64,000 nt of DNA. It comes from Macrostomum lignano. Taxonomy: Eukaryota. The notes under the pieces are model-generated. The model searched no databases and had not been told where the DNA came from. It saw only the letters and a list, made by a program, of their open reading frames with translations. Positions 23,838 to 35,800 of the stretch are shown here, piece by piece. The position numbers and the translations under genes were made by a program. Position 1 is the stretch's first letter, and each line of letters opens with the position of its first letter. The stretch spans positions 806,001 to 870,000 of the forward strand of contig NIVC01000061.1 in assembly GCA_002269645.1 (NCBI GenBank), in the 5' to 3' direction.

Positions 23838-26800
23838 ATGACAGGAGCCGCTAATCGGCGTCAAAACTCGATTTTGTCAAGTTGCTGCTCAGGTGGCGGC
23901 ACGTTTCTGGGAAAACTGCTCCGTCAGAAAAGTCTGACAGAAGCCCGATCGCTTGAGACTCCGTTGAAACGGTGCCTGACAGCCTATCAGCTGATCTTCT
24001 ATGGCATCGCCCACATGGCCGGCGCCGGCATCTACGTGCTGGCGGGCACCGTCATCAAGACTAAGGCTGGTGAGTCTGTCTGTCTGTCTGTCTGTCTGTC
24101 TGTCTGTCTGTCTGTCTGTCTGTCTGTCTGTCTGTCTGTCTGTCTGTCTGTCTGTCTGTCTGTCTGTCTGTCTGTCTGTCTGTCTGTCTGTCTGTCTGTC
24201 TGTCTGTCTGTCTGTCTGTCTGTCTGTCTGTCTGTCTGTCTGTCTGTCTGTCTGTCTGTCTGTCTGTCTGTCTGTCTGTCTGTCTGTCTGTCTGTCTGTC
24301 TGTCTGTCTGTCTGTCTGTCTGTCTGTCTGTCTGTCTGTCTGTCTGTCTGTCTGTCTGTCTGTCTGTCTGTCTGTCTGTCTGTCTGTCTGTCTGTCTGTC
24401 TGCCTGCCTGCCGGTCTGCCTGTCTGTCTGTCTGTCTGTCTGTTCTACTGTCTGTGTGTTTACGTGGACTTTTTGGAAGTTCAGTAGCCTCGTTAGCTGG
24501 ACCAACCGGTGTAGGTAGACCACTTAGGTGGACCACCAAATAATTTTGTCTCTGGTGGGGTTAAGACGTTGATGAGGATCTCACATTAATGTCAGGCGGG
24601 TCAAGAAAGGCTTAAGCAATTTTGGGATGTCTAGCATGGTTTTTTCCAAAGTTATTTGCATTTCAGTTTAGCTGGACCTCCAGCCTGGTCTACCTAAACC
24701 GAGCGAGTCTGGTCCACGTAAACCGAAAAATTTTAGAAAATTTTTCGAAAATCGTCTGTTTGTGTCTGTTTGTGTCTGCTTGTGTATAGCAGTTATTAAG
24801 CATAGATTCAATGCAAAACTGAATTTTTTACAGATCATTACCTTACGAACAAAGGGCTATGTTAGCATCATATTATGACCGCTACTGGCTTTAAAACAAT
24901 ATGCGTTCAGTTCTTTGACATTCAAGTAGGTGCGCAGGTTAATTAAAAATTCTGACAACCTCGTATGCGAAATGAATTTGATACAGTAAACTTTAAACTC
25001 CATTTAATTAGCTCAGTTCCAGCAATTCCGGTATCGTACTCTGAGCACAGACTCACAGAGTAAGACACCAACGTAAAGAAATCCAATTCGCTAACCAGAT
25101 CAAACGATAAAGACTCCGAGACAAGAAAGATATTTAAGTGAAGCCTAAATAGTATTCTTCAATGACTTCTCAAGAACTCCCAGTGGTCCTTGATAGCCAC
25201 ACTGTGTAAATGCGAATTTCTGAGGCTCTACCATTACACAAGAAGAAAATAGCAACTTCATGAATTAAGTGCTTGCCAATTCTATCCTAAACACTATGGA
25301 TATCCTGTTCTATCCTCCTCCAATTTTGGAAGAAGAAGATCCTAAGCTGCAGCCTTTCAAGTGCAAAGTTGAAGATGCAATTTACCTAATTGAAAAGGAC
25401 CATTCATACATGTACATGCAAAAGATTTGATCAAGACGACGCAATTAAGAAGGGCCTTTTAGCTAGCGATCGGGTCTCTGACTCTCTAGCAAAAGGTCGA
25501 CTTGATTGCGGTCCCAGTAAAACTAAGAACGCATTAACAGTCAGCCTAACACTCACTGTCTGTTTGGTCCACGTAAACACATGTGCAGGAGTATAGGGTT
25601 GGGACAGACAGACAGACAGACCTCCCTTTCTATAATTGGCTGGTTAACACTTAGGAGGATAGATCCACCCCAACAATGGGACCGACCGCAGCCAATAGGA
25701 AACCCGCAAGCGTTCTGAAGGTAAGACAGTGGAGAGAGGGATATATAATGTCTAAGCGGGTGGTCCACGTAAACCATGGCGTAGTGAGACCAGACACAGA
25801 CAGTTTAAAAGAAAGTACTTATAATCCATACTATACAACTCTAAAGGATTGCAATTGTATAGATTAGAACGGTTTTTTATACTTAATAGGTCTAATGTTA
25901 ATCCTTACTCCAAGTTTCATCCATATATAAATTTATTGTGCCAAAAACTGTAATCTACAACCAAGATATGATGACCCGCAAAAAAGGACGCCAAGCCTAA
26001 AATAAAAACTAAAAAAACACCGTCGCAAAAAGCCACTGCGAAATCGAAGAAGCCGCATCGCCTGGTGAAAATCATCAGTCTGCTCGCAAATCCGTCGACA
26101 ACGAGTCCAGAAAAGTGAGTTTCGTTTGATGATCTCAAAGTAGCTAGCTGCAAGGCCTGCAAATCAATTGCTGTAGAGAAGCTGGTCCACCTAACCTACA
26201 GACACAACTGAATCAGCTCTCTCAGTCTGTTTGAGGCTTTGGCTCTCAGAAGGTGGTCCACCTAACCTACAGACACAACTCGAACAGATTTCTCTGTCTG
26301 TTTAAGGCTCTGGCTCTTAGAGCCGCCGAGAAAGTTTAGTGCAGAAAATGCTTCAGTTTGTTAGAATGCAATCAGAACAGATTCCTAGAAAGTGAGCTAG
26401 TCCAGCATCAAGGCAGAACATCTGGATGTGTAACGAAAGTCTCTCGAAGACTCCTGGCTCAGATTATCGCCTAGAAGTGCTTTGGAGTAGCTGGTCCACC
26501 TAACCTACAGACACAACTCGAACAGATTTCTCTGTCTGTTTGAGGCTCTGGCTCTCAGAGCCGCCGAGAAAGTTTAGTGCCGAGAATGCTTCAGTTTGTT
26601 AGAATGCAATCAGAACAGATTCCTAGAAAGTGAGCTAGTCCAGCATCAAGGCAGAACATCTGGATGTGTAACGAGAGGCTCTCGGAGATTCCTGGCTCAG
26701 ATTATCGCCTAGAAGTGCTTTGGAGTAGCTGGTCCACCTAACCTACAGACACAACTCGAACAGATTTCTCTGTCTGTTTGAGGCTCTGGCTCTTAGGTGG

Positions 26801-32800: not shown

Positions 32801-35800
32801 GCTTTGGAGTTGCTGGTCCACATAACCTACAGACACAACTCGAACAGATTTCTCTGTCTGTTTGAGGCTCTGGCTCTCAGAGCCGCCGAGAAAGTTTAGT
32901 GCCGAGAATGCTTCAGTTTGTTAGAATGCAATCAGAACAGATTCCTAGAAAGTGAGCTAGTCCAGCATCAAGGCAGAACATCTGGATGTGTAATGAGAGG
33001 CTCTCGGAGATTCCTGGCTCAGATTATCGCCTAGAAGTGCTTTGGAGTAGCTGGTCCACCTAACCTACAGACACAACTCGAACAGATTTCTCTGTCTGTT
33101 TGAGGCTCTGGCTCTCAGAGCCGCCGAGAAAGTTTAGTGCCGAGAATGCTTCAGTTTGTTAGAATGCAATCAGAACAGATTCCTAGAAAGTGAGCTAGTC
33201 CAGCATCAAGGCAGAACATCTGGATGTGTAACGAGAGGCTCTCGGAGATTCCTGGTTCAGATTATCGCCTAGAAGTGCTTTGGAATAGCTGGTCCACATA
33301 ACCTACAGACACAACTCGAACAGATTTCTCTGTCTGTTTGAGGCTCTGGCTCTCAGAGCCGCCGAGAAAGTTTAGTGCCGAGAATGCTTCAGTTTGTTAG
33401 AATGCAATCAGAACAGATTCCTAGAAAGTGAGCTAGTCCAGCATCAAGGCAGAACATCTGGATGTGTAATGAGAGGCTCTCGGAGATTCCTGGCTCAGAT
33501 TATCGCCTAGAAGTGCTTTGGAGTAGCTGGTCCACCTAACCTACAGACACAACTCGAACAGATTTCTCTGTCTGTTTGAGGCTCTGGCTCTTAGGTGGTC
33601 CACATAACCTACAGACACAACTGAAGCAGCTCTCTCAGTCTGTTTGAGGCTTTGGCTCTCAGAAGGTGGTCCACCTAACCTACAGACACAACTCGAACAG
33701 ATTTTTCTGTCTGTTTGAGGCTCTGGCTCTTAGGTGGTCCACATAACCTATAGACACAACTGAAGCAGCTCTCTCAGTCTGTTTGAGCTTTGGCTCTCAG
33801 AAGGTGGTTCACCTCACCTACAGACACAACTCGAACAGATTTCTCTGTCTGTTTGAGGCTCTGTCTCTCAGGTGGTCCACATAACCTACAGACACAACTG
33901 GAACAGATTTCTGTGTCTGTTTGATTGTCAGTTAATTTTATTTTCTACCTTTGTAGGAGCCTGTGGTTGATTTTGTTCACCTGAGCTCGACGAGACTGAC
34001 TGCGTTTCACCGAGATGAAGGTTAAAACGAACTGTAAAAGAAGATTCAAACCACTTATTGACGAGAAATATAGAAAGGTTCATCATAGAGCTGAGCTGAC
34101 GAAAGCGGATTCGATGGCTGAGTAAGCTGAAATTCGTGAGAGAGGCAATGACAGATCAATAACAGAAGCGGTCCCGGACCACGGAGGCAGGGAAGGTCCA
34201 GGAGAATATTTCGTAGAAAAATAAGAAGATTAAGCCATCATCTGCGTGAACGAAAAGATGAAAGTCGGTAAAATGATTGGCTTATCATATGATTGCTCAC
34301 CAACTCATTCAGTATAATAGGACTGATGTAGTCAAATCAATTTAATTTCAGTTTTAGTAACTTTTGTCGTTATTAAAAATGCCCTTCAACTTCTTGTAGG
34401 CTCGTACTCGGATGACCTTTTTTAACTAATGGAATCTTACGTTTGTTAACATGTATTTGAAGCATACATTTTGACCTAAATTAGTTTTAATGAGTTTACA
34501 GTTAGTATTTGATATGATTCTGTATTTATTTTCAAAATGCTTTATTTTCATTCACCTTCTTGTATTCACGCGACGCAACTAACTAATGCGATCGTACATT
34601 TGTTTAACCCGATTAACCCGATTAATAATGCTAAATAAATTGGTTTGAACTTGGGATATTTTCATTAAATGACGTCGTAACCCTTTTATCTGTTCTTTTT
34701 GAGAATTTCTGTTTTAATTAGTTCAAAAGAACAGTTTAAAGCAATAAATTTTCTACAACGAAAGAGGTCTAACTAAACCAACTGTTTTTTTGCGGTCCAC
34801 CTAACCCGGTCCCCAAAACGTAGTTAGTGAACCACCACAGTTTCCCCGAACTGGCTATTCCGTCAAGTTAACAAAAAGATAACCCTAGCTAGCCTTTCGC
34901 GTTGTCAAAACAGACTCTATTTTTTAACCGGAATTGCGTGGTCCACGTAACGCATTAACATAACTCAGGTCCCGCTAAACACACAGACAGTCGTAAGAGT
35001 GTCTGTCTGTCTGTCTGTCTGTCTGTCTGTCTGTCTGTCTGTCTGTCTGTCTGTCTGTCTGCCTGCCGGTCTGCCTGTCTGTCTGTCTGTCTGTCTGTCT
35101 GTCTGTCTGTCTGTCTGTCTGTCTGTCTGTCTGTCTGCCTGCCTGTCTGCCTGTCTGTCTGTCTGTCTGTCTGTCTGTCTGTCTGTCTGCAGCAGTTCAA
35201 TTCGGCCCCAAATTCAGCCCAGAAGCGGCAAGCTCACATACTCGTAGCAGCTCGTGGTTAGGAAAAATAGTTGTCATCGATCTAACTGCTAGCTGAGGCT
35301 AACGGGGATCGATACTGCGCTCTCATACAGATTTTGTGGAACTCAGCACTCAGCTGCTCATCAGTCAGTGAGGAGGAGCTTTAATCGATCCCTTTGCTCC
35401 TAATTGCTGGTTGGTGCATGACTGTTAACCCGCTGCAAGCAGCTTCCGGTGAAAAAGTGCATCAAAATTGGCGCTCACAGAATAAAACTCTGTTTTATGA
35501 TCCATTCTTCTGATTTTTGAAACCAACAAAAGCGATCAGATGAAAGAGATCAAGTAATTTAATAACCCAAATGAGGGAAGCCACAAATATGGGACAAAAT
35601 GAGCGAAAACCGTAAGACAAGCCACCATCAGCTCCATGGCTTTTTGAGAAACCTTTCTCGAATGCAATTTTCATCAGCAATGCAATGCAGTTGTCATGGC
35701 AACAATGCAATGCAGTTGTCGCCCCCCTCTGCACCCGGCAGGCCCGGCAGCCTCTCTGAGCTTCCTGCTCTGCGCCCTGCTCAGCGTCTTCACCGGCCTC

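Follow-up and report, generated by a model that had tools for sequence, protein, structure and literature searches.

A 10.5-kb block with inverted ends and a 238-bp satellite splits a microsatellite in an SLC7/CAT intron of Macrostomum lignano

In Macrostomum lignano, a (GTCT)n microsatellite that lies early in the first intron of an SLC7/CAT gene was found to be split by a 10.5-kb block that is bounded by inverted repeats and consists for about three quarters of a 238-bp satellite. We give a probability of roughly 0.55 to the reading that the block is one copy of an element resembling a DNA transposon, non-coding and non-autonomous. Judging from the repeats themselves, a subterminal module of this element has plausibly expanded in place into the satellite. 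The window, that is the whole stretch of DNA analysed, comprises 64,000 nucleotides of contig NIVC01000061.1 from assembly Mlig_3_7, and all positions refer to it.

The interrupted microsatellite and its empty paralogue

The intron was placed by mapping the annotated protein PAA92169.1 on the window with tblastn. Exon 1 ended at 24070 and exon 2 started at 35735, which gives an intron of 24071–35734; exon 2 was 98% identical to an M. lignano protein. A sequence-only reading had proposed a 10.5-kb inverted-repeat-bounded block inside an SLC7 intron, and this was borne out by the protein mapping and by the ends at 24447 and 34991. The block extends from 24444 to 34999 when defined by the interruption of the microsatellite and from 24447 to 34991 when defined by the inverted repeats. 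Its surroundings were as follows:

23709–24070, plus strand: SLC7/CAT exon 1, ending ...KTKAG and followed by a GTGAGT splice donor at 24071 (tblastn of PAA92169.1; ORF list)
24074–24443, plus strand: left portion of the target (GTCT)n, about 92 units, with the rare variant run GCCT GCCT GCCG GTCT GCCT at about 24400–24421
35000–35189, plus strand: right portion of the target (GTCT)n, 47 units, ending in TGCAG, with the variant run GCCT GCCG GTCT GCCT at about 35060–35076
35735–37192, plus strand: SLC7/CAT exon 2, starting PAASLSF...

The block is absent from a duplicate copy of the SLC7/CAT gene. The paralogous contig L001 (NIVC01001134.1) was colinear with the window through exon 1, GTGAGT, an unbroken (GTCT)n and then the matching downstream intron, and the joined flanks of the window were 99.3% identical to it upstream and 92.7% identical downstream. 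L001 is the empty site that had been proposed as a check on the block, and since it exists the block is taken to be a discrete unit of the insertion type; alternatively, L001 could have lost the block when the two direct (GTCT)n arrays recombined with each other. The variant run GCCT GCCG GTCT GCCT was present on both flanks of the block and missing from L001. The sequence L002, itself from NIVC01000061.1, was 100% identical to window positions 13706–47852.

Ends, end motif and satellite

Within and at the borders of the block the following features were identified:

24447–24469, plus strand: left terminal inverted repeat ACTGTCTGTGTGTTTACGTGGAC, with three unmatched bases, TCT (24444–24446), between it and the microsatellite
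24447–24545, minus strand: left arm with three reversed end-motif copies (24460, 24493, 24524), spaced 33 and 31 nt
24668–24790, plus strand: orientation switch point and diverged proto-unit, with motif copies at 24668 (minus), 24687 (plus) and 24711 (plus)
25553–25621, plus strand: internal copy of an element end, CTGTCTGTTTG + GGTCCACGTAAACACA + 22 nt + (GACA)4.5
25762–25803, plus strand: second internal end-like copy, GGTCCACGTAAAC + 19-nt insert + ACACAGACAG, then non-microsatellite sequence
26177–33924, plus strand: satellite array (7.7 kb) in the order A'(71), AB, AB, A(68), A'(71), 28 x AB, A, A', A, A', A, A' (truncated)
33925–34790, plus strand: unique non-coding right internal segment
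34794–34968, plus strand: right subterminal region, in which the motif occurs in forward orientation at 34794 and 34940
34969–34991, plus strand: right terminal inverted repeat GTCCCGCTAAACACACAGACAGT
34983–35006, plus strand: candidate 3' hairpin ACAGACAgTC-GTAA-GAgTGTCTGT, its 10-bp stem including one mismatch and its 3' half lying in the flanking microsatellite (z = -2.27 in a 61-nt context)

The 23-bp inverted ends described from the sequence were reproduced, as 24447–24469 matched the reverse complement of 34969–34991 at 20 of 23 positions with the outer 16 perfect, and the best match at any offset among 3000 pairs of 53-nt stretches drawn at random from the window was 17, none giving 20/23. 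After removal of the nine microsatellite-like outer bases, 11 of the inner 14 nt matched. The inverted similarity ran on to about 55 nt (24447–24504 against 34991–34939, 69%, E = 0.006). The terminal repeats lie 3 nt (left) and 8 nt (right) from the microsatellite boundaries, separated from them by unmatched filler, and no direct repeat was found immediately outside them (TCT versus CGTAAGAG). Neither was there an unambiguous target site duplication (TSD) at the block flanks, in line with the sequence-only reading, in which no short one had been seen; the TSD is unreadable because the target is periodic, and the 4-nt period of the flanks is compatible with a hidden TSD of 3, 7, 11, 15... bp (3+4n). 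TT was present at the left junction only (T-TCTA), the right one being G-T. A host T precedes the insert, whose first bases are TC and which ends in ...GTAAGAG. A canonical Helitron (5'-TC...CTRR-3', inserted between A and T) was rejected on this end sequence and on the flanking bases T and T.

The end motif was confined to the block. With at most one mismatch GGTCCACNTAA had 51 matches against 2.6 expected, all between 24460 and 34950, and GGTCCACNTAAMC had 39 exact matches against 0.02 expected; no copy of GGTCCACNTAA was found in the remainder of the window, nor in L001 and L008–L010, nor in 100 kb of other M. lignano loci. Copies on the minus strand were located at 24460, 24493, 24524 and 24668, and those on the plus strand at 24687, 24711, 25566, 25762, 34794 and 34940 and once in each satellite unit. 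Three more minus-strand matches with one mismatch (26793, 33591, 33730) were palindromic overlaps of neighbouring plus-strand copies, and the terminal copy at 34968 had two mismatches. The pattern noted earlier, with the motif reversed near the left end, forward elsewhere and present once per satellite monomer, was thereby confirmed: four copies were reversed in the left 230 bp and about 47 were forward across the remaining 10.3 kb, with the switch at about 24680. Each end has two mirrored copies of the 11–13-nt motif (GGTCCACNTAA[A/C]C) inside the inverted repeat of about 55 nt and a third one beyond it, 77 nt from the left terminus and 187 nt from the right. Because of this distribution of orientations, the satellite is in effect the over-grown right arm of a strongly asymmetric element.

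The AB monomer of 238 bp is made up of A (68) and B (170), and the array comprises about 39 units overall. The 30 AB monomers displayed a mean pairwise identity of 97.7%, which points to recent or continuing homogenisation. Sub-units of 68–71 bp are found at the array edges, and the amplified 238-bp form corresponds to this module of 68–71 nt plus an extra 170 nt. Every satellite unit opens with the end motif as part of a copy of a subterminal repeat of about 29 nt; the right subterminal sequence 34938–34966 and the opening 29 nt of the unit were 76% identical. Since the monomer opens with a homologue of the subterminal repeat, the array has plausibly grown from an end module.

A diverged single satellite unit was also present in the left region, at 24711–24790 (motif, hairpin, then GTCTGTTTG). 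In the proto-unit of 24668–24790, the motif copies are followed by the palindrome CGAAAAATTTT-AG-AAAATTTTTCG and by a tail formed of a degenerate GTCT/GTTT microsatellite-like patch, (GTCTGTTTGT)x3 at 24750–24787, about 300 bp from the 5' end. A hairpin follows the motif both in the A unit, with z = -2.26, and in the unit at 24711, with z = -2.49; none was detected in the A' unit or at the internal ends (25566, 25762). The internal copy at 25553–25621 resembles the left end plus flanking microsatellite on the other strand (24440–24469 against 25567–25596, 77%). Its position beside (GACA)4.5 is a faint hint of a preference for microsatellite targets.

No transposase had been recognised in the block from the sequence, and the block proved to be non-coding: outside microsatellite it held no ORF longer than 81 aa, and a protein search with it gave no matches. 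No transposase or autonomous partner was identified. The Rfam scan gave nothing up to E = 1 except a chance match to a miRNA model at 21 bits, and no tRNA, 7SL or 5S head was found in the block. A known structured RNA, a SINE or a ribozyme-bearing satellite was rejected, there being no real Rfam match and no tRNA-like head. The other M. lignano DNA that was searched, about 150 kb, contained no second copy, a metagenome scan gave chance matches only, and the literature yielded no description of this family. It is plausible that the family is undescribed.

Origin of the block

The growth of transposon end-repeats into satellite DNA is a known route of satellite seeding. For the block, the course of events may be depicted as follows. 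A transposase or Rep-type protein, supplied in trans, would bind the motif copies, recognise the ends and move the element into the microsatellite. After insertion, or already in the source copy, the subterminal module would be duplicated by slippage or unequal exchange, and the resulting array would grow in place to its about 39 units. An array of such size probably makes the present copy immobile. The earlier suggestion of a non-autonomous element that carries or generates satellite DNA agrees with a discrete, non-coding unit with inverted ends, mirrored subterminal motifs and a monomer starting with a subterminal-repeat homologue, but neither a second copy nor an autonomous partner was found. 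Weighing against a transposon are the imperfect inverted repeat, whose outer 9 nt resemble the target repeat, and the presence of additional 'right-end' copies inside the block (25566, 25762); the reading is drawn from a single copy.

Possible, though rather unlikely, is a non-autonomous element of the Helentron type (HINE/DINE-1-like) that would be transferred in single-stranded form by a Rep/helicase/endonuclease protein, with the inverted ends as subTIRs, the 3' hairpin as terminator and the satellite as the 'central repeats' module. A left module, single-orientation tandem repeats and a right module without ORFs or a visible TSD agree with this, as does an insert that opens with TC after a host T. 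The 5' subTIR of HINEs is located 2–4 nt from the 5' terminus, and the inverted repeat of the block begins 3 nt inside its 5' boundary, but its 23 nt, reaching about 55 nt with two mirrored motif copies, exceed the 11–15 nt of HINE subTIRs. The 5–10-bp palindrome that follows the 3' subTIR of HINEs has a possible counterpart in the 10-bp-stem hairpin directly after and overlapping the 3' inverted repeat, and hairpins are also found behind the motif in the A unit and the 24711 unit. Half of this 3' stem is, however, automatic from the (ACAG)2 end adjoining (TGTC)n, its 3' half being flanking microsatellite, and neither the A' unit nor the internal ends (25566, 25762) have the hairpin. Moreover, the 3' inverted repeat lies 8 nt from the microsatellite and not 38–60 nt from a definable 3' end, the 6 bp of the 5' IR partner are not significant (z = -0.6), and the TT/T-rich target of HINEs with Ts at both boundaries contrasts with a right junction without TT and a (GTCT)n target that is not T-rich. 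Central repeats in fixed orientation and a left-module microsatellite are both present in the block, as all array units are forward and the degenerate patch lies at 24750–24787, and the block is tied to (GTCT)n; (GTCY)/(GTCK)n microsatellites are found in the left module of oyster and Lepidoptera HINEs (PMC7492417; reference list of PMC4067079). The (GTCT)n around the block is a pre-existing target and not an internal module as in HINEs, because it is present in the empty paralogue.

It is improbable that no transposon was involved, and that break repair or template switching brought a satellite-bearing segment, copied or pasted, into a fragile microsatellite, or an ancestral block was lost from L001 by (GTCT)n recombination, the inverted ends being a local inverted duplication of motif-rich DNA. 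The variant run shared by both flanks and missing from L001 suggests a duplication of about 76 nt or a conversion from flank to flank, and is not predicted by simple cut-and-paste insertion. The unmatched filler (TCT left, CGTAAGAG right), the failure to find a second copy in the other M. lignano DNA searched (about 150 kb) and the very many large indels between M. lignano paralogs, about 36% of aligned length (PMC10733133), point the same way. Against this, the indel boundaries fall within 3–8 nt of a 23-nt inverted repeat, far beyond chance, and mirror-arranged motif copies at both ends are the signature of a discrete element and not of a random segment. Such a 76-nt duplication would also fit target-primed reverse transcription in a repeat and could be the long TSD of a composite non-autonomous retroposon (SVA-like, with internal VNTR) or of piled-up retroposon 3' ends, mobilised by a LINE carrying an (ACAG)n tail, which we hold to be very unlikely. 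Read on the minus strand, the left end has the order body-ACACAGACAG-TAGA-(ACAG)92, like a 3' end with a tail primed on a matching microsatellite, and it keeps the phase of the (CTGT)n array through the TCTA unit; the internal copies of the end have (GACA)4.5 behind them or terminate in ACAGACAG, and a LINE 3' end in the window (2747–3320) bears a 273-bp (AGAC)n tail. The block has, however, a terminal inverted repeat that retroposons do not need, no similarity to the LINE 3' UTR of the window and no tRNA, 7SL or 5S head, and its other end-like copies and right end are oppositely oriented relative to the microsatellite. An assembly artefact, in which a foreign repeat-rich segment was joined through long (GTCT)n overlaps, is barely credible: the two junctions are indeed placed in microsatellite arrays of considerable length (386 and 190 bp) and the M. 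lignano genome is hard to assemble (PMC5730564), but the contig resumes the exactly colinear intron after the block, so that two compensating mis-joins are needed, and arrays of such size are spanned by PacBio reads.

Comparison with known systems

Cg_HINE of Crassostrea gigas and DINE-1/DINE-TR1 of Drosophila share with the block the succession of left module, fixed-orientation tandem-repeat core and right module (PMC7492417, PMC4067079), together with short inverted repeats near the ends, a potential hairpin after the 3' inverted repeat, an association with GTCY/GTCK-type tetranucleotide microsatellites and the lack of ORFs and of a visible TSD. Insertion within a microsatellite and termini resembling the target repeat are found in MuTAnT of Medicago and in microsatellite-targeting elements of guayule and rice (PMC4486113, PMC5907723), families that rest on hundreds of copies with known TSDs and transposases, whereas the block is one copy.

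A separate foldback element was located in the same window:

62733–63412: genuine foldback element with a 9-bp TSD

Foldback-type elements therefore exist in the M. lignano genome. Like the block, this element is non-coding with arms of short tandem sub-repeats, but its 268-nt arms are symmetric (97% complementarity) around a 144-nt loop, and at its ends the sequence bears no relation to that of the block ends. Of the long inverted arms of tandem sub-repeats on both sides that define foldback elements, the block has about 55 nt that align inverted, and its arms are extremely asymmetric.

Tetris, a non-autonomous foldback-type element of Drosophila virilis and D. americana (PMC4079207), differs from the block in TIRs of up to 1.7 kb, repeats in both arms, TSDs of 8–10 bp and many known copies, against an inverted repeat of 23 to about 55 nt, a one-sided array, an unreadable TSD and one copy seen; the two share no sequence similarity and belong to different phyla. 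Both are non-coding with inverted ends and arms of variable, asymmetric length, and in both tandem repeats within an arm (about 220 bp in Tetris) have expanded to kb-size satellite arrays between the end domains. The end domain and the repeat unit share a short stretch in each case, about 29 nt in the block and 37 bp in Tetris, where it is common to the TIR flank domain and the TIR-220 repeats, with arrays of up to 66 copies (PMC4079207). The anatomy of the block is closest to that of foldback/TIR elements with tandem-repeat arms of the Tetris type, with several Helentron-HINE-like traits.

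The locus and its unoccupied counterpart

The host gene was recognised from an exon of an SLC7/cationic amino-acid transporter, a 498-aa open frame at 35696-37192 with 98% identity to a Macrostomum lignano protein. A cluster look-up yielded a second annotated protein, PAA92169.1, whose locus (NIVC01000061.1, GCA_002269645.1, Mlig_3_7) is 100% identical to the window over 13706-47852. When PAA92169.1 was mapped to the window, exon 1 was seen to end at 24070 (...KTKAG, followed by GTGAGT) and exon 2 to begin at 35735, so that intron 1 spans 24071-35734 and, as had been proposed from the sequence alone, contains the 10.5-kb block (24447-34991).

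NIVC01001134.1, a paralogous contig from this assembly, runs colinear with the window and shares 92-98% identity with it. There, exon 1 and GTGAGT are followed by one unbroken (GTCT)n of about 68 units and then by the intron sequence that the window shows on the right-hand side of the block. When the window flanks were joined by script and compared with this contig, identity was 99.3% upstream and 92.7% downstream, and intron 1 measures about 1 kb in the contig versus 11.7 kb in the window. The search for an empty site suggested by the sequence-only reading thus ended in an unoccupied paralogous site with an uninterrupted microsatellite and colinear flanks. M. lignano is reported to have three homeologous subgenomes with about 2% SNP difference but about 36% of their length in indels (PMC10733133), and the best interpretation of the contig is a homeolog or haplotype whose site is empty. 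Loss of the block, if the two direct (GTCT)n arrays recombined with each other, could also produce the same picture. Other kb-scale presence/absence differences were seen at 19910-21416 of the window (versus 7720-7784 of the contig) and at 38900-39320 of the window; such differences between paralogous loci fit the reported indel-dominated divergence of the subgenomes. Upstream minisatellite arrays such as 16106-17875 are common to both loci.

At the left junction the microsatellite ends at 24443, and TCT (24444-24446) precedes the left inverted repeat. At the right junction the eight bases CGTAAGAG (34992-34999) follow the right inverted repeat and the microsatellite restarts at 35000. A target site duplication (TSD) of 2, 8 or 9 bp at the boundaries of the terminal inverted repeats was absent on reading both junctions; the flanks are periodic, so the absence of a visible duplication is uninformative, and a hidden one of 3, 7, 11... 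bp is compatible with them. A rare run, GCCT GCCG GTCT GCCT, occurs in both flanking arrays, at 24400-24421 (22 nt before the block) and at 35060-35076 (60 nt after it), which implies either that about 76 nt of the target were duplicated or that the two arrays later underwent conversion. Its GCCG unit is absent from the microsatellite of the paralogous contig.

Inverted ends, end motif and satellite

The original description of the block was borne out in every detail when its ends and the counts and orientations of its motif were re-measured. The left end (24447-24469) matches the reverse complement of the right end (34969-34991) at 20 of 23 positions, the outer 16 perfectly, and none of 3000 random pairs of 53-nt stretches drawn from the same repeat-rich window reached 20/23 at any offset (maximum 17). 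With the nine microsatellite-like outer bases removed, 11 of the inner 14 nt match, and in a sensitive self-comparison the inverted similarity reaches about 55 nt (24447-24504 versus 34991-34939, 69%, E=0.006). The motif found near both ends was counted as GGTCCACNTAAMC in 39 exact matches (0.02 expected) and as its core GGTCCACNTAA, allowing at most one mismatch, in 51 (2.6 expected), all within 24460-34950. The minus-strand one-mismatch matches at 26793, 33591 and 33730 overlap neighbouring plus-strand copies, and the terminal copy at 34968 has two mismatches. The layout is mirrored, each end carrying a terminal and a subterminal copy, at offsets of 13 and 46 nt on the left and 13 and 41 nt on the right.

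Features of the block, with minisatellites of the neighbouring gene (window coordinates)
24460, 24493, 24524, 24668; minus strand; copies of the end motif
24687, 24711, 25566, 25762, one per satellite unit, 34794, 34940; plus strand; copies of the end motif
25566-25621; forward; first internal end-like sequence: motif, AACACA, 22 nt, (GACA)4.5
25762-25803; forward; second internal end-like sequence: motif, 19-nt insert, ACACAGACAG
26177-33924; satellite array
44884-46257, 51169-51666, 52304-52846, 53423-53859, 54356-54889, 55424-55868; examples of minisatellites in the O-GlcNAc transferase gene

The satellite units are ordered A' (71 bp), AB, AB, A (68 bp), A' (71 bp), 28 AB (238 bp each), A, A', A, A', A and a truncated A'. 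From this order the basic unit is a 68-71-nt module (A or A'), and in the amplified monomer a 170-nt segment, B, is added to A. The 30 AB monomers have a mean identity of 97.7% with a weak four-monomer period, a homogeneity that fits recent growth or homogenisation in place. That the repeat associated with the ends seeded the satellite, as had been suspected, is supported by the homology of the first 29 nt of each unit to the right subterminal repeat at 34938-34966 (76%) and, on the opposite strand, to the left one; by a second motif, TGTCTGTTTG, whose 36 occurrences all lie within the block and which marks the other end of the module; and by a proto-unit at 24711-24790 in the left region, a diverged single copy of the whole module in the order motif, 11-bp palindrome and three times GTCTGTTTG. 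The idea that the 68-nt unit is a circle junction (right end joined to left end) was rejected because its second half has only the octamer CTGTCTGT in common with the left end; this octamer is part of a local hairpin, CTCGAACAGA/TCTGTTTGAG.

The two internal end-like sequences may have been left behind by other copies or by rearrangements. Of the two, the first resembles the left end plus flanking microsatellite, read on the opposite strand, which hints that another end of the same family also adjoined this type of microsatellite.

No open frame longer than 81 aa was found in the block outside microsatellite, and a 2781-aa chimeric query of all open frames of at least 32 aa from the non-redundant block had no relatives among 5.8 billion proteins. 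A ribozyme, SINE or structured-RNA satellite was rejected, as the block has no Rfam or tRNA match. Two further details were seen to the left of the array. A promoter-like layout at 25690-25780 (two CCAAT-like boxes, TATATAA at about 25743, then an end motif and ACCATGG about 25 nt downstream, its ATG meeting a stop at once) could drive transcription into the satellite. A lysine-rich open frame at 25975-26125, without a start codon and ending at a consensus splice donor (AAAAG/GTGAGT), may be a captured or decayed exon; no protein relative of it was found.

Minisatellites are also common elsewhere in the window. Almost every intron of the O-GlcNAc transferase (OGT) gene (44461-56477) is filled by a private minisatellite, as is much of the upstream region 6700-20300, with periods of 20-41 bp and lengths of 0.3-1.8 kb each.

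Origin of the block

The block is a discrete, non-coding insertion into a microsatellite; inverted repeats bound it, and its satellite derives from the end module of the block itself. We read it, with a probability of roughly 0.55, as a non-autonomous DNA element in which expansion of a subterminal module gave rise to the satellite. A Tetris-type foldback/TIR element and a Helentron-type HINE fit the architecture about equally, and therefore only this general statement is committed to. A non-coding element with inverted ends would have entered a microsatellite beside an exon, after which its end module would have expanded about 40-fold, taking an intron of about 1 kb to 11.7 kb in only one duplicated gene copy.

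A HINE (PMC4067079, PMC7492417) ranks second and is possible, if clearly less probable. TC are the first bases of the insert, and 3 nt separate its 5' boundary from the inverted repeat. After the 3' inverted repeat comes a hairpin whose stem is 10 bp long, although half of that stem is automatic from the (ACAG)2 end beside (TGTC)n; hairpins also come after the motif in unit A and in the unit at 24711, whereas several units have none. The left module holds a degenerate GTCT/GTTT patch, and (GTCY)/(GTCK)n microsatellites are characteristic of HINEs in molluscs and Lepidoptera (PMC7492417, PMC4067079). However, the target is neither TT nor T-rich, a 3' end lying 38-60 nt past the subTIR cannot be assigned, the inverted similarity exceeds the length of a HINE subTIR, and the 5' inverted repeat is not significant. 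A canonical Helitron was rejected on the ends of the block.

An origin without transposition, by break repair, template switching or retention of an ancestral block deleted in the paralogous contig, is unlikely; it would suit the flank variant that is seen twice, the filler bases and a genome rich in indels, but the boundaries coincide with a highly non-random inverted repeat. We regard a retroposon as very unlikely: the LINE 3' end at 2747-3320 bears a 273-bp (AGAC)n tail and the minus strand of the left end looks like a body plus (ACAG)n tail, but the block has a terminal inverted repeat and its other end copies are oppositely oriented. Mis-assembly through the microsatellites is the most improbable explanation, since the contig resumes the exact colinear intron after the block.

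Two non-LTR retrotransposon fragments of opposite orientation lie at 2157-3593: on the minus strand an RT domain (2157-2867), on the plus strand the C-terminus of an ORF2 (2747-3247). The latter fragment terminates in the (AGAC)n tail (3321-3593), an indication that LINE tails account for many (GTCT)n/(AGAC)n arrays in M. lignano. The best relatives of the RT fragment are short ENA/JGI metagenome contigs (up to 82% identity).

Further copies and comparison with known elements

No second copy of the block was found in about 150 kb of other M. lignano sequence, which shows that the family is not hyper-abundant and nothing more; the motif was absent from a further three SLC7 paralog loci of M. 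lignano (75 kb), which gave no BLAST match either. A chimeric query of multi-copy LINE proteins and OGT, meant to sample more of the M. lignano DNA and to reach the third paralog, yielded no locus from this worm; all matches were short metagenome contigs or OGTs from other species. Scanning JGI metagenome contigs for the motif-plus-tail pattern gave five single matches, which are confined to the pattern and hence chance matches. Nothing specific on an element of this type or on M. lignano satellites was found in the literature, and the family is probably new.

A bolder reading, which we hold to be quite doubtful, is that an undescribed flatworm family homes to (GTCT)n through its own (CTGT)2 termini while its module seeds tandem repeats. 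It is hinted at by the rare microsatellite variant found in identical form on the two flanks, by the internal copy of an end that adjoins (GACA)4.5 and by the recurring motif-plus-hairpin units. Targeting could then proceed by base-pairing or homology-guided integration, for example by a single-strand/HUH-type route with a tetranucleotide target or by integration duplicating tens of repeat bases. The end-plus-hairpin module would be a self-propagating seed of the tandem repeats, which are unusually abundant in M. lignano and make up 13% of its assembly (PMC5730564).

The three subgenomes of M. lignano differ mainly by large indels (PMC10733133), and this locus shows, in a clean and datable case, how an indel of that kind comes about. 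If multi-copy, the family would offer a transposon-to-satellite system in a genetically tractable flatworm and would aid annotation of the 'unclassified' repeat fraction of this genome.

Elements of the foldback kind do occur in M. lignano, as seen from a true foldback element at 62733-63412, whose 268-nt arms (62733-63000 and 63145-63412) are 97% complementary around a 144-nt loop. The arms consist of tandem sub-repeats of about 14 bp (TTGCCCGC..GAGAT), the flanks carry a 9-bp TSD-like repeat (TTTTTTAAT / TATTTTAAT), and the end sequences are unrelated to those of the block. The block itself fits the foldback/TIR type in its mirrored end motifs, its orientation switch at about 24680 and its one-sided overgrowth. 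Tetris of Drosophila virilis is likewise non-coding, with arm repeats of about 220 bp that have a 37-bp stretch in common with the end domain and that form expanded arrays with as many as 66 copies (PMC4079207). The route from transposon to satellite is already known and the general understanding of its mechanism is unchanged by this locus; new here are the phylum and probably the family.
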